Shown: positions 51,460 to 64,000, numbered from the stretch's first letter. The stretch is DNA of 64,000 bases from Adineta vaga (GCA_021613535.1 CP075492.1:3286001-3350000); one strand, 5' to 3'. Notes: a model not told the origin generated them from the letters alone. Numbers and translations are program-made.

Positions 51460-54193
51460 CTATTTTAATCTCTTTTCGACAATTTCAATCTTTTTTCGTA
51501 AATTTTGTAGATCAGGATGCGACAATGATAAGGAATTCTCCCAAATTTTCAGAGCACGTTGATAAAATACAAGTGCATTGGAATAATCTTTGATGGCGTC
51601 ATAAATTGACCCAATATCATCGTAAGAAATAGCTAAACCGGGATGTGTTGAAGATAAAGTTTTTTGTCGCATCTCCAGTGCTTTTCCCATAAAATCAAAT
51701 GCTTTTTTGTATTCTTTCATTTGATAATAGACTCTTCCAATGTTGTTATATGGTGTTGCTGAATTCGGATGATTTGAAAGAGAACTTTTCTCATCGATTT
51801 CTATGGATTTTTCAAATAATGATAATGCTTTCGAATAGTCTTTCATTCGATAATGTGGGTTACCGAGATTATTAAAAGCCCCAGCTGATAATGGATGATT
51901 GGAAGGTAAAATCTTTTCTCGAATATCTAATACTTTCTCGAGAAAGAAAAGCCCTTTCGAATATTCTTTTAAGTCTACATAAACTAAACCAATGAGATTG
52001 TACGAAGTTGCTAAGTCCGATTGTATAGGAGAGAAATGTTTCTCATGAATATCAATTGATTCTTTCAAATATGAAAGTGCTTTTGTATATTCTCCAAGGT
52101 TGTGATATGCTCCACCAATATTAATGTAAGATGTAGCCAGTAGTGGATGATAAGGAGAAAGAATTTTTTTCCAAATTCGAGATGCTTTTTCTAAATATGA
52201 AAGTGAATTGAAATATTCTCCCATTCTATCATATAATAAACCAACATTGTTATAGGATATTGCTAATGAATGATGATTTGTAGGAACAATTGTCTCTCGA
52301 ATTGTAATGGCTTTTTGATAAAGTTCCAAAGCTGATGAGTAGTTTCCCATCTGATAATACATTGAAGCAATGTTATGATAAGATTGAGCGAATGAAGGAT
52401 GATTGAATGAAAGAATTTTCTGACGAATCAGAAGATCTTTTTCATAATATAAAAGTGCTTGAGAATAATTTCCCATATTTTTATGTAATCCACCAATATT
52501 TCCATATAAGGTAGCCGACACAGAATGATTTGAGGGCAGACTTTCAGTTCCAATTTGAAGAGCTATTTAAAAAAAAGAAAGTGCTTTGCAATATTGTCCC
52601 ATTTTATTATATACTAAACCAAGATTATTTAGACAAATCGTTAGATTCGAATAATTAAGATAGAAAGTTTTATTATAAATATCCAATGCTTTTTGATAAT
52701 ACTCAATCGCATGTTCATAATGACCCTCACTATATTTAACATAACCCAGTTGATTTTGATACATTGCTTTTTGCATTTTCATTCTTTGTTTGATCTAATA
52801 GAACTAAATAAATTTCTTCTGCTTTATTAATTTGATCAATTTTAATTAATAAATGTCCTAATTGTTGCCAGCCATCTTCATTTGCTTTCCCATGATAATT
52901 GTTTTATCTGGTAATAAAAATGTAAAAAAAAAAATAAAAAAATATCTGAATTCTTTTTTCACGAAGAAATGAAACTTCATTTCTTAAATGATCAGTTAAT
53001 ATTCGAAGTTGTTGATCATCATTCGACGTCAAATGAAGATTAACTTCATAAAGTTGATTTGTCATATCAATTGATTGAATACTAACGACACGAAAGACAG
53101 TATGCATTGAAAAAAGAATTTCTTCTTCCGTATTAAATGAACTCAATTGATCAATTGATGCAAATGGAGTTGAAGATATTGAAGGATCAATAAACATTTT
53201 AAAAAGAATTCCAATTGTATGTTTATCTGTTGCAACACTTTCGGCATAACTTAATGAAATGTTTTCATTTTGACTCGTCGAAAGAAAATTATTAAATGAA
53301 ATTAATCCACCAATCGTTATTTGCAGTTTTTCATAATCATCTTTCGATAAACCTTGCCCTCTATAAACAGTAAAAGCTTCACCGTGATAATTGTTTATCT
53401 GTTGTTGATATAATTGTTTTATCTGGTAATGTAAATCATGAAGAAAAAATCCCATTTTAATAATCGTTTCACCATTTAATCCTCGAAGTGCATCATTAAG
53501 CATTGAATAAATAAATGTCGATGAAGTATACCACCAGATTGGTGTTTTATCGTAATATTCAATCTCAAATCGATTTACATTTTTTAAACTTCCAAATTTT
53601 CGATCTCGACAATAAGAAGTAAATGTCTTTAGGGATTCTTCGGTATATTCGAATTGAAAAAGAATTTCTTTGATAATTTGTGTGTACATAAAGGATGCTT
53701 CTAATTGATCTAAATTTGAATCCAATGGTTTTCTCAAAAAACTAACAGGAATCGAATTTTGATGATTAAAAGAGTTCATGGTTGACTTTAGTGATTCGCA
53801 AATATCTTTCATATTTGTTTGAATACTTTTTACCTTTGTCCATGAGTTATTTTGATATTTTTCATGAGATAATATATAAATACTATCAAGTTGAGAAATA
53901 TCATGAATTAAAGGTATTAATTGTTGATAGAGAAAGTCATCTATAATTAGAATAACTTTACGATGATTGAGATCAGTGAGAAAATCAATACATTCATCCA
54001 CTTGTTGAAATATATGAACATCATTAACAATATGTTGTAATTGATCTTGATAATTCTCACTGGATTGATCAATACGAGTATTCAAGTAAATGAGAATGAA
54101 ATCTTGTGTAGAACATGGTTTGAAATAATCAGAAGATTTCGTTCTATTTTTCAATATTTGAGACGTCGTTGCTTTCGATTTCTTTTGTCCCAT
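51460..54193 (-). pseudogene. Second ART-TPR gene, disrupted by frameshifts and an insertion
   Basis: IWWYT, VYRGQG, FLSTS, EEEILF followed by 42-aa TPRs. Breaks near 52890-52975, ~52770 and the A-run at ~52570. Confidence 0.8.
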
Positions 54194-54609: not shown

Positions 54610-57600
54610 TTAATAACGATCATATTCATCATCTCTCAAAAATAATTTCAATGTATTGTTCTTTCGTAAAGTTTTCATCACATAATTTTTCGTTACTTTT
54701 CCAATTTCGTTACGTCGCAAATCAAGTGTGGTCAGTGTCTACATGTATAATGATGAATTTAATTGAGATATAGAGAAAATAATTATGATATTTACCGTGT
54801 TATGTCGAAAGACAGCAGTTAATGCTTGTGCACCTTGATCGCCAATCACATTCGTAGCAAGATCAAGAAAAGTGAGTGTCTATTTTAATCAATCAAAACA
54901 TTACCAAAAAAAACCCACTGCATTATAACAAGAAAATTGAATTACGTTATTATTTGCAAAAGCATCAGCCAAATAATCAGCTCCATGTTGCTTAATTTTA
55001 TTATTACTAAGAATCAAAGTGGTAAGTGTCTGTGGCAAAAAAGATTCAGATAGAATATATGAGAAGAAAAACGAAGCTTAGAAATTTACCGTATTATGAC
55101 GTAAAGCATTACTCAATTCTTGAATGCCTTGATTTTTTATTTCATTCTGCTTAAGATCGAGTTTAGTAAGTGTCTACAACAAAAGAAAAATCACTGTTGA
55201 AATAAGAGAAAGAATAGTGGGGAAATATTGCCTTGTTATTTTGTAAGACATTAGCCAAATACTTGATTCCGTCATCTGCAATTGTATTATGAGAGAGAAT
55301 CAATGTAGTCAATGCCTATACGTAATAGTAGTCAGCATATATGAATAGACAAGAAATGAAATATACTTGAGTATTTTCTAAAACATTCGCTACATATTGC
55401 ATTGCTTCGTTATTAATCTTATTACGAGAGAGATTGAGCATCGTTAATGTCTATAAAAGAGAAATGATTCAGAAGAATTAACAAAGATTGAAACTCACAT
55501 TATTGTTTTGAAATGCCGTAGCTAAATGTTTCATGCCATCGACACTCAATGCATTATGTTGAAGATCGAGTGTGGCAAGAGTCTGTAGGGAAACACATCA
55601 GATATGAATACTCACATGATATGGATGGTGAAATTTACTTTATTATTTTGAAAAAAATTAATGAAATATTCGATTCCTTCAGCAGTGATTTCATTATTAC
55701 TAAGTTTGACTGCGATCAGTGTCTAAATGACAGAATATAGTGATATAGACGATGAAGAGACTTTATTTTACTTCATTGTTTTCAAGAGCTTTAGCCAAAT
55801 ATTGAATCCCTTCATTATCAATTTCGTTTTTACCTAAATCGAGTTCTGTCAATGTCTGCGTAAATGAAAGAACAATGATAAGAACAAAATAGAAAAACAA
55901 TACACAGATTTACATTGTTGTTTTTAAGAGTTTCAGCTAAATGTTGTGCTCCATCAGCGCCAATTTGATTTTCAGATAAATCGAGTGATTTCAATGTCTA
56001 ATTGAAATATAAATAGTATGACACAAGAAATAGAGACAGACAAAGATTTACAATATTCTTCTCTAAAACTTTTGCCAATTGTTCAGCTCCTTCAGGACCA
56101 ATTTTATTTTCACGAAGATTGAGTGTAATGACCGTCTATACAGAATTTCGATAATGAAAAACAAAAGTATAGTAATAAGGAATGTTTACATCATTATTTT
56201 CTAGAATCTTCGTCAAATGTTCAATTCCTCTATCGCCAATTGCATTAGAGGCAAGGTTTATCGTCGTAAGTGTCTGTAGATGAAAATCGTATGAAAATAG
56301 AAAACTATATAAACTCAAATTCACTTTATTATTTTGGAATGCATTTGCTAGATTTTCAATTCCTTTTGTACCAATCTTGTTATTTTCAAAATTTAATGTA
56401 TTGAGTGTCTATGTGTTAAATAGGTGATACGAATTCATGTAAGAAACAAAGTATATGACGTACTTTATTATTTTCAAATATATCAGCTAAATATTGAGCT
56501 CTTTCCATACCTTTCTCCTCATCTTTTAAATTAAATGTCATTAATGCCTATATGCATAAATTTAAATAGAAAACTTCGGAAAAAAACAAAAGAAAAATCG
56601 ATGACTGACTGTGTTACTTAATGAAGTATCAAGTTGTTCTTGTTGTTTATCTTGACCGGTAATTTCCGTATCTTCAAGGCTTATTGGTGTAGTTCTCTAT
56701 ACAAATATATAAAAACATAATAAAAAAAGAGAAAAATAAAGTTAACCATATCATTTTCGAAAGTTTTTTTCAAATATTGCATTTTCTCCTCTCCGATCTC
56801 ATTTCCTTTGAGACTGAGAGTAATGAGTGTCTGAAAAAAGAACCCAACTAATAGATGATCATCAAAAAGAATTCATTTTACTGTATTATCTCGAAATGCA
56901 TCTGCTAAATATTGTGCCCCTTCATCTTTTATAAGATTACCATAGAGACCAAGCTTGATGAGAGTCTTATGATAAAGAAGTATTGCAGATATTTTCGAAA
57001 AAAATCGAATATTCACTTTGTTATTTTGAAAAACTTTAGCTATTTGTTGAGCTCCAATATCACTAATGTAATTATTCTGTAGGAGGAGTGTATTGAGTGT
57101 CTATATAAAATATATGATGATGAATGTGAAATGAATTTTGAAAAGTAAAAGATATTTACATTATTATTTTCAAGAACAGATAATAAATAGTCAATACCAT
57201 CATCTTCAAGTTCATTTTGAATAAGACCGAGACTAGTGAGTGTCTGTAAATATGAACAGTAATATAATTAAGACAAACAAACAAACACAAATTTACTTGA
57301 TTATTTTCCAGAACAGAAGATAAATATTTAAGTCCATCATCACCAACCCAGTTATAAGATAGATCAAGTTCGATGAGTGTCTTCATGAGAAAATTAAAAC
57401 GTATTATTCAAATAGAATAATTTAAAATTTACAGTATTATTTTCAAGTAATTGTACGAAACATTCGACACCTTCAGGACAGAATTTATTCGTAGCCAATC
57501 GTAGTATCCTGATTGACTAAATAGAATTGTAATGATAATTACAAGCAAGATTAAGATAAGATCAAATTTACTTTATTATTACACAAAGCTTCAGTTAGAT

Positions 57601-60600
57601 ATTCGATACCTTCAGTACCATCAAGACCAATTCTATTTCTCGACAAATCAAATTCAACAAGTGTCTATCGAAAACAATTCATATACAAAATAAAATTACG
57701 ATGTACATTCAAACTCACCGTATTATTTCGAAGATAATCTGCAAGATATTTAACTCCTTCGAATCCAGTATTGACTCTGCTCAAATTAAGTGTTCTTAAA
57801 TTCTAAAGAAATCAATAAAACTATAACAGAAGAAAGAAAGAAAAAATTAATAATAACCGTATTTCTTTGAAGAACATCTATCAAATACCGAATTCCTGTA
57901 TTACGAAGTTTATTAAATCCAAGATCTAATGTAGTCAATGTCTAGAAGAAAATCTCATGAGCGAGATTAACAAATATGTCGAACAACTTACGGTCACATT
58001 TTGAAAAGCATTTGCTAACCATTGTATTCCTTGTTCTTCAATTTTATTATCAGCAAGTTTCAATATTGTCAAAGTCTATTTGATATAATCAATGAAAAGA
58101 TGATCATTTCATATTGAGAGATAAAATACTTTAGTATCTTGAAGTGCATTAGCTAAATATCGAAGTCCCTGATCTCCAATATCGTTATTATTCAAATTGA
58201 GTTCCACGAGTGTCTGAACAAAACATGAGAAATGAAATAAAACGAGAAGAAAAAAATTGGAATTTACTGTATTATTATGCAAGATATCTGTAAGATATAA
58301 AACTCCTTCGGTACGAATTTCATTTCCATCAAGTTCGAGATTGGTTAATGTCTATTGCAAAAACAATGAGAAAATGAAGTTTAGGAAAGAATTTTTACCG
58401 ATTTATTTCGTAAAGCTTTAGAAAGATATTCTGTTCCCATCACATCGATATGATTACCATTGAGATTAATTGCAGTTATGGTCTATTCGATAAATTGAGA
58501 TAAATATCAAAATATTCTAGTAAATTTACTGTATTATTTCGTAAGGCAACAGATAACAATCGAATTTCTTTGTAACCTATTTCTTTATTTTCAAGATTGA
58601 GTTTTATAAGTGTCTATAAACAAATTAGAATTAACAACATAAGAAAAAAGAAAATCTCTACCGTATGATTTTGTAATGTCTTAGTCAAATAATGAATCCA
58701 TTCTCCACCAATTTCATTCACAGCGAGATTATATGTCGTCAAACTCTATATAAAGATGATAATAAAATACTATATAAATACAAGTACAAATGTACCAATT
58801 TATTTCGTAAAGTTTGAGACAAATATCTTGCCGCATCAATTGTGATTGGATTACCTGTCATTCCTAATTCTGTTAATGTCTAGAAATAAAAGAATTCAAA
58901 ATAATAAACAAAGAAAGATTTAACAAAAAATATCTTCGCACAGTATTATATTGTAGAAAATCAGCGAGTTTATGTGCACCTTGATCAGATATTTGATTGT
59001 GTCCAAGTGTCAGTTCTTTGATTGCCTATATCATAGAGTTTAACATATGAAAGATAGTATCGAAGGAATTTTACCACGTTCATATTGTATACTAAAGCAA
59101 CAGCTAAAGATTCAGCACCACCATCACGAATTTTATTAAATCGGAGATTGATATTGTTCAATGTCTAGAAATCAGAAATAGAGAGAGAGAGAGAGAAAAG
59201 AGACAATTAGAACGTACTGTATTCTTCTGAAAAGATTCAGTTAGACTTTTAACACCGGCATTTCCTATTTGATTATTTGAAAGATCCAGTATACGAAGTG
59301 TCTATAAACTCCAATAGATAAAATGTATATATCATATAGAGAAATAATTATCTCTACCGTATTCGTTTTCAAAGCTACAGCTAGATGACTTACACCAGCA
59401 TTACCAATTTCATTTGCCGAAAGATTAAGTTGAATGATTGACTTTTGGAGAAAAAGAACAAACATGAATTTAAATCATATAGATTGTGTTCCATACTTTA
59501 TTTGTTTGTAAAGCATATGTAAGATATTGTGCACCGATAATTCCCAATCGATTGCTTGAAAGAGAGAGTGTAGTTAGTGTCTGTATAAAATGATAAATAT
59601 ACAATTGAGAAAGATAAAATAGAATTCAATTTACTGTATTAAGTCGTAGAATAGGAGCTAAAACTTGAATACCATCCGGTCCTAATTGATTGTAGCTCAG
59701 ATCCAGTTCAGTGAGTGTCTGTATTCAGAAGAATAAAAGTATAAAATAAAAGATTGAAATTATATTTACTGTGTTAAAGCCTAGAGTTTGGGCGAGACTT
59801 TTAGCTGCAATAGAACTGATTTGATTGCATGATAGATCGAGTTTAGTAAGTGTCTAGATAAATTTCAATAAATCTAAAAGAGAAGATCTGAAATAATGAT
59901 TCTTACATTGTTATTTTTTAAAGAATCAATTAGATATTGAATTCCTTCATTTCCAATTCCATTTCTTCCAATATCAAGTATTGTTATTGTCTGTAAGAAA
60001 AAAATCTTGATTATAGATTTCGAATGAAACGAAAAGAAATTTTTATTTACCTGATTCTTTTTTAAAGCATTAGCTAAATATACAATTCCATCGGATGTTA
60101 TTTCATTGTTTGAAAGTTTGAGTGTAGTTAAAATCTTTTATACAAATGAAAATCATTTCGATAAGAAGAAAAAAAAAGATTTACTGCGCCATTTTCTAAT
60201 GCATCAGCTAAATATTGAATTCCTTGACATCCAATTCTGTTCGATCCAAGATCGAGTGTAGTCAATGCCTTGGAAGAGATACAAAATAGATGATTGTTAA
60301 TGATAAGAAACTTACGGTATTAGTTCGAAGAGTATTAGCAAGATATTGAACGCCTTTATTTTCAATTTTATTCGATGCAAGATTGAGTGTATTCAACGAC
60401 TTTAAAGAAAATAAAGATTCAAATCGAAGATATGAAGAAACAAAGAAAATTACAGTGTTATTTGATATAGCCTTGTAAAGCATTAGCTAAACATTCTGCT
60501 CCATAATCTCCTATTTGATTATTTTCTAGATTAAGTATTTGAAGTGTCTAAAAACCAAGAATAACTATCGAATTTCTATCAATAGAATATTTACCATATT

Positions 60601-61082
60601 TCTCGGTATGACAAATGCAAGATGTTGAGCTCCATTATCTCCAATTTGATTACTCGAAAGATTTATATTACTCAATGTCTAAACGCGAAAATATCGAATA
60701 GAAAATATTAATAAATAAGAGATTTACTTTGTTATTTCCGCATGCGTTTGCAACATACTGAGCGCCTTGAGATTCGAGATGATTCGCTGAAAGATCAAGT
60801 ATTGTGATTGTCTAGTTTGAATAAAGAAAGTCTATAGATAAACACTACTGAATATGATTTACTCTGTTATTGAGTAGAGCATCAGCTAAATATTGAACAC
60901 CTTGATCTGATATACGATTTTTCGATAGATCAATTTTGAACAATGTCTACAAAGAATAACTACGAATGAAATATGAATAATATACAATAAAACTAACTGT
61001 ATTTTTTCGTAAAACATCAGCAAGTTGTTGAGCCCCTTTATCAGTAATTTTATTTTTTGTTAATTCAAGTATTTTTCCAGTC
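54610..61082 (-). repeat. Tandem array of ~84-nt exon + ~53-nt intron units encoding RNI/NLR-type 28-aa LRRs
   Basis: Period about 137 nt. On the + strand most units show ...GTCTA/GTCTG (acceptor) and TTAC/CTAC (donor). Confidence 0.92.
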
Positions 61083-64000
61083 TGTATGAATAAAGAAACT
61101 TTGCGATAAAACGATATTTCAATGGAAGAAACTTTCTACTTTTAAAGTTTCATGCACTGGTTGTTGTTGATCACAATTCTGTATGATTCTATCCGTATCA
61201 TCATTTTGTAAATTGGAACTTAAAAATCAAATGAAAACAAAATCGATGTTTTCAAAGATCGAAAATCAATTACATTTCTTTCTGTTTTTGTTCATCAAAT
61301 ACTTGTTGCCAATAGGATTCAGCAATAACTTTTTCACGATCTGTTATTTGATGATCCATTGAATTTGTAAGGATATTGACTTGTTTCGAAGGAGTTAAAT
61401 TCGGTAATGGTGCTAGAGAAATAAACAAATCATTATTTGAATTATTTCATTTGATACAATCTTACGAATATGTTTATTTACAAGTAAAGAAGTCGTATCT
61501 GTATCGGAAACAATAACAGATTGTAATCGTTCTGATTTATCTAAAGATGAAAATGAATTATAAGAAATGATTAATATAAATATTGATTTTACTATTTGTT
61601 CTATGATGTCGACGTGATCCAAATAAATTTCTACACATCGAACAAAGATACATAAAGAATTGTCCAAGATAACATAGAATATTAAATGGTGGAGGTAAAA
61701 CAGTTTTATCTTTCATCTCATAAATTAACCAAAATCGTTGATTTCTCCATAAATCATTGGATTTTTCTTGAACACGTGTAATCTTTTCACTAAATAATAT
61801 CCATAATTAAATCCTTCGATATCATATTCAAAATAACCTGATTTTCTTACTTAAATAATGCAATAAGAACATTAAGAAGAAGTACATTCGATATAACTGT
61901 AAAACCAATTGCAAAAAAGAAAACAAATGTACCACTGATATCATTTTCTAAAATGATTTCATTGTGTATGTTTTTTATTTCGCCATAATTATTCAAATAT
62001 TTTTGTCTACATACCACTAACAGAATCATTATAAGGTTCAGCAACTTGTCCAAATACTTTCCATATACCCCAATTGAATAAATCTCGTAATAATTGCCAA
62101 TTCCATAATTCACTACTATCCACGATTATTCTTGGAATTTGTAATGATGTATTATCCGATGCATTTGGCCAAAGAATTTGTGAATTCGTTGTTAAAAGTG
62201 CCCAAGACGAAACCGAAAAACCAAAAAGAATAATAAGAATAAAACAGACAAAGATCATCATCGCATCTTTTGTCTAAAAGAAACAATTATTAAATGAATT
62301 TTTATAATCTTCAATATAATTTCACCATTTCATAGATCATTGTTAATTTTGGTCCTAATTGTTTCGATGTAGCAAAGAAGAACAGTATTCGAATATACCA
62401 AATGACACAAGAAATCGACATGAATATTCTATATAAAAAAAGATAATCAAGATCTTTGGACAAAGAGACAAGTTTGTACTCCATACACCATAAGTTTTCT
62501 TTTCAATCTCTCGGTACTCTCGATGAATAGGTGATCTGAACTGACATAAGAAGGATTAGAAAAAGCATGTTTCTGACAGACGAGATATATGAAACGCGTT
62601 CTCTAACCGTTCGCCTTGATCTGGACGTTCACTCCGGAAAGAGAAAGAAATAACTTACTTTGACCAAATGAAAAATATTCGTTGTTCAGACCATCGCGTA
62701 CCAAATGCTAATAAATAGAAAAGTATACCAGCTTGATCCATCCAATTCCATGAATTTGTACTATAATTATAATTCATTAGAAGTTGTGAAATAAACTAAA
62801 GATAAATAATTCATTTTCAAAAATTCCAAAGAAAGAAAAACAAACTTGATATAATTCATCAATAATTAAACTCCACATACAAATATGTAAGATTAATTCT
62901 GTGAATGAAATTGGTAAATTAAAATATCTATAATGATATTCCATATCAACATTGAATGGAAAATAGCCAACCAAAAGAATATAACTGAATACGAATAAAA
63001 AAGCAACGAAAAATACCTAAGTAAAAGAAATGAAAGAAAAGAATTTTCATTGAATTGATGCAAAACATCTTGTTTTTACTAAATTATTATAAAAACGTAT
63101 CACTGGTGCTTGATAAAACCATTTGATTCGTTTTAAATTATTTGAAATACTCCATCGATTTGATAAACCATCTTTTGGTGTTGCTACTTTATAAACAACA
63201 GTTGCTTCATAAGGATTCGATGAATTCGATTTCTTGAAAACATTTAAACAAAAACAAAAATTCTCAAATCATTCATTTTCATTTGTAATTACCGTTTTAG
63301 AATTATTTAAACTATTCTTAAATAAAGATGGACATAAAATTGGTAAAATTGGTATTAACGGAAAAAGTAATGCAGCAAATTTAATCTATAACGAAAGAAA
63401 ATAAAGACAAAATCTTTTCATTGAAATCTTTTTAACAAACCCAAAAAGTCGCCGAAATATTTAATAATCTTTGTTGATAATTAAATCGATGATACCACAT
63501 GATTTCTAAATGTTTTTGTATTGTATCACTTGCAAGAAATATTCGACAATTAGCACGTTGGGCAATATCCAATGGAAAACAATTATAAAATGTTGATGCT
63601 TTACATTCAAGTAATTTCAATGCAAAATCTTTATCTGTCGATAAACATTTATCAATAATCATTCGAGAATGTTGATCAAATTCTCTACAAAAAAGGAAAA
63701 TAATCATCAAATACGAAGAAAAAGAAATTTACTCGGCTGTATTTTCTAAACATCGTTTATTTTTTCTCACAATTTTTTCAGCTGAACTATAAATTTCAAC
63801 AGCAAGAAGACTTGCAACTATTTGATTCTAAAGAAAAATAATTTTCAATAAATATGAATAATTCAAATTACAATTCGTTTTACTCGACTTCTTGAACAAA
63901 GATATTTGGCAATTGCGGGTTTATTCATAAATATAAACCAAAGATAAAGTGCTTCAGTTTTTCTTCCATCGAATATTTTTGATAATGAAAGAAAATTTCG
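54610..64000 (-). CDS. TRPM-like cation channel (5' part outside the window) fused to a C-terminal array of about 47 LRR exons
   Basis: MHR4-like PLDIAQRANCRIFLASDTIQKHLEIMW, WFYQAPVIRFY, YIRILFFF..SKQLGPKL.MI, SNVLLLNVLIALFN, W..QRF..I.E....LPPPF. In-frame linker exons lead to repeats T(L)..L.L..N.I...G...LA..L..N. Stop at 54610-54612. Confidence 0.85.

Follow-up and report, generated by a model that had tools for sequence, protein, structure and literature searches.

TRPM proteins are textbook examples of channels with an acquired C-terminal effector or sensor domain, a Nudix domain in TRPM2 and a kinase in TRPM6/7. In LRRC8/VRAC, a C-terminal cytoplasmic leucine-rich repeat (LRR) domain of the ribonuclease-inhibitor (RI) type is carried on the pore subunit and modulates gating, and to our knowledge this is the only well-described design that joins a channel to cytosolic LRRs. 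In NOMPC, 29 ankyrin repeats act as a gating spring linked to microtubules. Here we analysed a gene on the minus strand of a 64,000-nucleotide stretch of Adineta vaga (G000:C3:3286001-3350000; hereafter the window, with about 29% guanine plus cytosine (GC) and introns of about 50 nt), which probably encodes, as a single gene, a TRPM2-like six-transmembrane cation channel with a tail of 47 RI-type LRRs. That the TRPM-LRR fusion architecture is real we consider almost certain. One gene with a TRPM part and a long RI-type LRR part, as proposed earlier from the DNA alone (the sequence-only reading), is found in spliced RNA contigs, in two gene models of A. steineri, in the A. vaga ohnolog and in a metagenomic locus, L015. 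The same reading knew of no described example, which holds for TRPM channels, as full-text literature searches found no description of a TRPM-LRR protein, but not for channels with cytoplasmic RI-type LRRs, for which LRRC8/VRAC is known. In public databases the TRPM-LRR proteins appear only as 'unnamed protein product' or 'Ion transport domain-containing protein'. A third and very different tail, predicted to be a protein-binding solenoid of 1,300 residues, conserved in several rotifer lineages and transcribed, would widen the concept of TRPM channels with acquired C-terminal domains, and would offer a natural system in which to study the coupling of a large cytoplasmic repeat domain to a TRP gate, alongside LRRC8 and NOMPC.

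To follow the junction between the two parts, we used contigs of three RNA runs (X1-X3) from one study, which contain roughly half the words of 60600-62300, the share to be expected of spliced RNA, and contigs of a DNA run (X6), all compared with positions 58200-64000. In the genomic sequence, the TRP-box exon leads through three linker exons into LRR exon 1 in one open frame, with AG and GT sites throughout. The RNA contigs skip every predicted intron, each with CT..AC ends (GT..AG on the minus strand). A 2,047-nt contig of X2 (record 4) holds 62795-62659, 62428-62326, 62273-62015, 61789-61594 and 61412-61274, with 76 letters between the last two pieces, corresponding to linker exon 1 plus base 61593, and 978 more letters on the LRR side. 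The arrangement is the same in a 934-nt contig of X1 (record 1), which bridges channel, linkers and LRR exons. In every 194-nt bin of 60916-61691 the RNA depth equals the contig depth multiplied by the exonic fraction (for X1, 7.73 x 109/194 = 4.34, 7.73 x 115/194 = 4.58 and 7.73 x 141/194 = 5.62), which indicates that the RNA lacks the linker introns as well as the one that precedes LRR exon 1. Retention of an intron in X1 record 1, of which 356 letters also fit an unspliced stretch, is excluded by the bin depths, which match exonic positions only. Further on, RNA joints within the LRR array are seen from 58351 to 60399.

The DNA contigs of X6 show no splice joints, and two of them, 60849-61393 and 61364-61980, overlap and run colinear across the junction, which excludes the genome misassembly that the sequence-only reading had allowed for at this point. 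Its open frame with GT-AG sites is thus found in both the sequence and the spliced RNA contigs, while the coordinates it gave for the linker exons were off by 1-3 nt. At 60878 and 60262, RNA and DNA contigs leave the window sequence and continue as LRR exons of the ohnolog, reading ...IRNHQ followed by TITTI... in RNA and by GTACTT... in DNA. It follows that the array of the ohnolog undergoes transcription and splicing too, and that words of at least 31 nt are common to the two copies.

The three linker exons differ in character. Linker exon 1 is weakly conserved, varies in length (48 nt in A. steineri) and is predicted to be disordered. Linker exon 2 encodes REKVIAESYW, a form of a conserved REKxIAExYW helix whose Y-W pair is nearly invariant in an alignment of rotifer TRPM fragments (A2), including the unfused TRPM of Rotaria (P0090), in which the helix precedes a coiled-coil-like end. 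Because the helix occurs in a TRPM that lacks LRRs, it is part of the TRPM C-terminal domain (rib-helix-like), and the true fusion point is the intron 61139-61082. Linker exon 3 has 79 nt in A. steineri as well, and its peptide is conserved in the ohnolog and in L015.

The same architecture is present in A. steineri. The A. steineri models P0069 (2,574 aa) and P0070 (2,402 aa) both hold LSDAT, TRPM2-like and LRR_6 domains, and P0069 is 71% identical to P0001, the public protein model of the A. vaga locus, over the best local alignment (47% of P0001 covered). The TRP and linker exons of the A. steineri locus (L013) measure 197/48/139/79 nt, compared with 197/75/139/79 nt here, with the same phases. 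For the channel, the ratio of nonsynonymous to synonymous substitution rates (dN/dS) between the two species amounts to 0.375; the corresponding values are 0.61 for the 89 codons of the linker and 0.17 for LRR1-4. In the P0069 model (L013:5807-7293) a 66-residue segment, LTDSDFALKLLECKAP...NIPAAVW, is present as two tandem copies bordered by introns of unusual length (463 and 484 nt), which reflects either a local duplication or a fault of the assembly.

A complete TRPM-LRR gene is also found in L015 (6199-14281, plus strand; Joint Genome Institute (JGI) metagenome 3300003486; also L016, 3300003407), from a rotifer-like eukaryote with 31.5% GC and short introns, and this TRPM gene is 37-42% identical to the Adineta proteins. 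Here the TRP box, the rib helix and linker 3 lie in a single uninterrupted exon, which one GTGAGA...AG intron connects in frame to about 28-30 repeats that close with a similar C-terminal motif. Many introns have been lost, and LRR exons hold up to 10 repeats. This single exon with its in-frame intron directly shows the linker to be coding sequence and the fusion to be older than the genus Adineta.

In the A. vaga ohnolog (C3:13745.6-13755.1 kb), the TRP exon is followed by about 50 one-repeat LRR exons. Its linker exon (C3:13747990-13748080) reads ...AATCGTGAAAAGTCTTCGCTG..., with an apparent 1-nt loss in an A-run near 13748030, so that one A too few puts NREK and VFAETYW in different frames; in A. 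steineri P0070 they are in frame. Either a homopolymer error of the assembly or a genuine frameshift could account for this loss, and in the latter case each A. vaga copy would have its frame broken once between the channel and the bulk of the array. For both copies, the current A. vaga models are incorrect or truncated.

The tail itself is a regular array of 47 one-repeat exons running from 61081 to the stop at 54610, the number that had been estimated from the sequence. Forty-two of them are exactly 84 nt long and in phase 0, and the others measure 76, 87, 90, 93 and 129 nt, the last being the terminal exon. The repeats are of the RI type, with 28 residues that form an LxxLxLxxNxI strand followed by a helix, and their consensus, taken per position from 42 repeats, is TLTTLDLSxNxIGDEGIQYLADALQNNT. 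Matches in the PDB are to ribonuclease inhibitor (1dfj, 4e-24) and LRRC34 (1e-28), and also to NLRP14, NOD2 and RNH1. As each 28-codon frame is open at about 29% GC, and P0001 matches Pfam LRR_6 at 1.2e-23, the array is far beyond chance. The per-position analysis of 42 repeats revealed no hypervariable or hyperconserved repeat face between orthologs, which speaks neither for nor against a ligand-binding surface. An LKLFL/LIVFL motif at the C-terminal end of the terminal exon is common to P0070 and L015. Two introns of the array are of the GC-AG type, one at 55231-55230, where the frame is kept, and one at 60471-60470, the cryptic donor of the damaged exon 5 (see below).

Searches for domains and structures were run with single window exons or public protein identifiers, and the spliced model was used for local frame checks, dN/dS and alignments. 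The sequence-only reading had suggested a profile search for TRPM, Ion_trans and LRR_6 domains, and these were indeed found: in addition to LRR_6, P0001 holds the SLOG domain (Pfam LSDAT_euk, 8.8e-16; 2.1e-19 on the ortholog P0069) and a TRPM2-like domain (PF25508, 5.3e-12), and Ion_trans is matched at 7.2e-8 in P0069:1-1310. Exon by exon, the raw open stretches give sub-threshold Pfam scores (TRPM2 domain 1.6e-3, LSDAT 1.3e-3), so the family assignment rests on the public proteins P0001 and P0069. The channel part matches TRPM8, TRPM2, TRPM5 and TRPM4 structures in the PDB at 1e-25 to 1e-20, and also TRPM7. For the ortholog, the best alignments of the transmembrane core are those with the choanoflagellate TRPM2 chanzyme (7e-28) and the sea-anemone TRPM2 (6e-26). 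The chanzyme alignment spans S1 to the TRP helix, and conserves E..Q in S2, N..D in S3 and an E after the TRP helix, residues that sit at the Ca2+-site positions of TRPM2/4/5/8. Exons of the window code for LGPKLTMIYEM, a pore loop VFGQVAEP with the FGQ motif, and SNVLLLNVLIALF, and both WRNQRFW and LPPPFN are invariant in alignment A2. Past the REKxIAExYW helix only about 27 residues remain before the LRRs, and no PDB homology is detected beyond the TRP region. No NACHT or NB-ARC match was found in scans of P0001 and P0069:1-1310 or in the precomputed Pfam lists of full-length P0069 and P0070, and Pfam likewise gave no TIR, death-fold or enzymatic domain on P0001 and P0069:1-1310.

Structure prediction, also suggested by the earlier reading, gave a consistent picture. 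An AlphaFold2 model of the ortholog segment P0070:1085-1500, made with a shallow alignment (mean predicted local distance difference test, pLDDT, 76.6), begins with the S6/TRP helix, continues through a stretch of pLDDT below 50 that corresponds to linker exon 1 and then a 39-residue helix (110-148), and ends in the solenoid. The predicted beta-alpha solenoid has pLDDT above 90 and would follow the helix directly, with no spacer.

The gene spans from its ATG at window-equivalent position 66563, which lies 2,563 nt past the window end (in L009), to the stop at 54610 (Table 1). In an exon map built from P0001 and the RNA pieces, channel and linker comprise 25 exons with 3,687 nt, or 1,229 codons, free of stops. 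The TRP-box exon has as its best representative match P0001 residues 1040-1104 (100% identity), and the S4 exon (62428-62326) is RNA-supported and partly missing from P0001. Two introns of the channel part are long amid the others of about 50 nt, one of 296 nt (64905-65200 equivalent, L009) and one of 230 nt (62429-62658), both on the minus strand; RNA depth is about zero across 62468-62661.

Table 1. Coordinates of the exons and parts of the TRPM-LRR gene, in window positions.
Feature	Position and size	Strand	Content or evidence
TRPM channel part inside the window	61593..64000	-	Late cytoplasmic N-terminal region through S1-S6, pore and TRP box
Channel exons, 1st-6th in the window	64000 (continuing to 64171)-63884, 63827-63733, 63684-63441, 63385-63293, 63232-63080, 63016-62846	-	
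Channel exons, 7th-11th in the window	62795-62659, 62428-62326, 62273-62015, 61947-61851, 61789-61593	-	
TRP-box exon	61789-61593, 197 nt, ends in phase 1	-	End of S6, TRP helix WRNQRFW, LPPPFN re-entrant motif; RNA piece
Linker exon 1	61540-61466, 75 nt	-	Exactly 75 letters between the flanking pieces in RNA records 1 and 4
Linker exon 2	61412-61274, 139 nt	-	RNA piece 61274-61412; also 139 nt in A. steineri
Linker exon 3	61218-61140, 79 nt, ends in phase 0	-	Last exon before the LRR array; depth arithmetic
LRR exon 1	61081-60998	-	AG/GT sites, in frame with the channel
LRR exons 1-4	60595..61081, 4 x 84 nt, phase 0	-	In frame with the channel
Damaged LRR exon 5	60454..60547; RNA form 60547-60472, 76 nt	-	RNA joints, depth and sequence
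LRR exons 6-46	54796..60399	-	All open; canonical sites except for a GC donor at exon 55315-55232
Terminal exon	54610..54738	-	Last repeat and a short tail ending ...LKLFLRDDEYDRY, then TAA at 54612-54610

The in-frame fusion that had been read from the sequence holds at the junction but not further on, where the frame of the array is broken at LRR exon 5. In RNA, this exon is delimited by joints from 60399 to 60472, with CT..GC ends and a GC donor in all three runs, and from 60547 to 60595, again in X1-X3, and the depth of its bin fits 76 nt (8.9 x 122/194 = 5.60), not 84 or 94 nt. The GC donor sits 8 nt upstream of the lost phase-0 GT donor: next to the end of the ancestral 84-nt exon (60464) there is AA in place of GT, and the next GT donor (60453) would give a 94-nt exon with an internal TAA. 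The 76-nt exon causes a +1 frameshift with a TAA 10 codons into exon 6, so that in the RNA contigs LRR exons 6-46 no longer share the frame of the channel. X6 DNA shows no indel at exon 5, which means that the lesion cannot be put down to this assembly alone; A. steineri has two intact repeats in its place. A 131-nt deletion fusing two repeats was also considered, but the nucleotide alignment fits better with loss of the whole second repeat and of the first repeat's GT donor; both readings yield an identical broken frame.

These observations speak for the explanation that this copy is a recently disabled or truncated allele, one to which we give slightly less than an even chance. It would yield a 1,376-aa channel with about five repeats or, if nonsense-mediated decay removes the transcript, no protein at all. 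The 42 LRR exons further downstream would be a remnant that has not yet decayed, and the function would lie with the ohnolog or the other haplotype. Beyond the short exon with its GC donor, the shift and the TAA, seen in three RNA runs, and the contrast with A. steineri, it would agree with the way in which P0001 retains an open reading frame (ORF), only by skipping most LRR exons. The 42 exons downstream of the break, however, are all open, have usable splice sites and are precisely spliced, and their dN/dS relative to A. steineri is 0.27 (LRR6-47). With the ortholog of the ohnolog as outgroup, lineage-specific amino acid changes after the break number 64 in A. vaga and 62 in A. steineri, compared with 66 and 84 in the channel region, so there is no excess of A. 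vaga-specific changes past the break. The downstream exons are thus intact, with no sign of relaxed constraint, and the solenoid tail is kept by purifying selection. Moreover, the neighbours of exon 5 are both in phase 0, so skipping it restores the frame and a 2,537-aa ORF with 46 repeats to the natural stop, in which exons 6-46 are in frame with the channel, and the contigs are compatible with such an isoform. We infer that the lesion is either very young, and possibly allele-specific, or bypassed by skipping of exon 5, and whether this copy yields a full-length protein we regard as evenly balanced.

Several points weigh against a single gene that encodes the channel with its complete tail. 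The ORF as transcribed has 1,376 aa, comprising the channel, the linker, four repeats and most of a fifth, and since the RNA is out of frame past exon 5, a full-length protein from this locus is not established. Assembled contigs carry no information on where transcripts end, on the proportions of isoforms or on single molecules, and all the RNA comes from one study, while the A. steineri evidence consists of gene models and not of protein. No LRR exons are present within 10 kb downstream of Rotaria P0090, the nearest TRPM reached there and a paralog, nor within 10 kb of the four other A. vaga TRPM loci. The homolog search was word-limited and returned few relatives, and is uninformative on fusions in Rotaria, Philodina and monogononts. 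The LRR tail is confined to one small TRPM subclade.

A single TRPM-LRR gene would encode a tetrameric cation channel, Ca2+-dependent to judge from the conserved S2, S3 and TRP residues, with a solenoid of some 1,300 residues suspended from each subunit, below the pore or cytoplasmic ring. As a binding domain for proteins or ligands, the solenoid might regulate gating or tether the channel, and the LRR tail would take the place of NUDT9-H in TRPM2 and of the kinase in TRPM6/7. That the solenoid is an intracellular sensor directly gating the attached channel is a doubtful extension of this proposal. By analogy, its inputs could be a ligand or pattern, as for the LRRs of NLRs, ionic strength, as in LRRC8, or force, as in NOMPC. 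Such a protein would combine receptor and channel in one polypeptide, with neither an NTPase nor a kinase in between, a signalling design that is not known from animals, and its symmetric one-repeat exons would allow repeats to be gained, lost or skipped with no break of the frame.

It is also possible, though we consider it unlikely, that the solenoid is not a ligand sensor but mainly a mechanical or cytoskeletal tether, such as a NOMPC-like spring or an anchor, for example to ciliary microtubules. The repeats form a long and regular array without any face that is hypervariable between orthologs, and the best PDB matches of the repeats include LRRC34 and RI-like proteins in 9fqr, 9y6s, 8j07 and 9e5c, which we take to be axonemal or ciliary assemblies. 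The tether is nevertheless an argument from analogy, and RI-type repeats match unrelated LRR proteins (RNH1, NLRP14, NOD2) equally well. A NOMPC-like tether and an LRRC8-like ionic-strength sensor may stand on an equal footing. An immune role, in which the sequence-only reading had an NLR-like solenoid possibly gating the channel, is not supported by any of these data. The protein is not an NLR, and only its LRR part resembles NLRs. A. vaga is known for expansions of LRR families (PMC3846280).

Finally, it is very improbable that the locus comprises separate TRPM and LRR genes joined only by read-through, by a chimeric contig or by misassembly, because, even if contigs are no proof of single molecules and the NCBI model of the ohnolog, P0072 (I4U23_015247, 1,227 aa), ends before the LRR array, that model splices round the A-run and stops there solely due to the apparent 1-nt frameshift in the reference, whereas in the window the four junctions from the TRP exon to LRR exon 1 are spliced in frame in RNA with no stop available, the LRR frame offers no ATG from the rib helix to repeat 1, A. 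steineri conserves the lengths and phases of the exons, L015 joins its TRP-box and linker exon to the LRRs by a single in-frame intron, and the DNA contigs are colinear.

A neighbouring gene on the minus strand (52904-54193), 417 nt downstream of the LRR stop, is a single-exon ORF of 429 aa whose start, MGQKKSK, resembles a myristoylation signal and which contains an NAD:arginine ADP-ribosyltransferase domain (Pfam ART 1.4e-8, ADPrib_exo_Tox 1.4e-5). The presence of an ADP-ribosyltransferase next to a TRPM2-like channel is curious, but adjacency in a eukaryotic genome is no evidence of linkage.

Among known systems, the best match of the core is TRPM2 with its NUDT9-H tail (PDB 8sr7 from a choanoflagellate and 6co7 from a sea anemone; 1e-27 to 6e-26), with which the A. 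vaga protein shares a SLOG/MHR N-terminus, the residues at the Ca2+-site positions, the TRP box, LPPPF and a large domain after the C-terminal helices. It differs in having an appended solenoid of 47 RI-type repeats (about 1,300 residues) and no Nudix fold, and no long pole-helix coiled coil is evident. As in TRPM6 and TRPM7, a C-terminal functional domain is fused to a TRPM channel, but theirs is an alpha-kinase, whereas the tail described here has no enzymatic domain. The C-terminal domain of human TRPM7 is reported to interact with LRRC8A in trans (PMC8137958), which is a loose parallel only. Another combination of such domains is present in P0087 (JGI metagenome, 2,303 aa), which holds TRPM-type SLOG (795-1070), TRPM2-like and ion-transport domains together with LRRs in one protein. 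Its LRRs, in contrast to those of Adineta, are of the SHOC2/LRR_8 type and N-terminal (about 100-430), and it has an additional RyR domain (1516-1589), so that P0087 is an independent combination of LRRs with TRPM. P0086 also combines a RyR domain with TRPM.

As regards the tail, the repeat consensus is common to ribonuclease inhibitor and the LRRs of NLRs (NLRC5, NLRP14, NOD2), with one repeat per phase-0 exon in the gene studied here, but unlike NLRs this protein has no NACHT, CARD, PYD or TIR domain, and its array is attached to an ion channel. NOMPC/TRPN is likewise a TRP channel with a very long cytoplasmic repeat solenoid, but its 29 ankyrin repeats are N-terminal, whereas the LRRs of the Adineta protein are C-terminal. 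LRRC8/VRAC has a pannexin-like four-helix pore, forms hexamers, conducts anions and carries about 17 repeats, compared with a TRPM-type six-helix pore, a presumed tetramer and 47 repeats in A. vaga. The LRRC8 and TRPM-LRR fusions arose independently.

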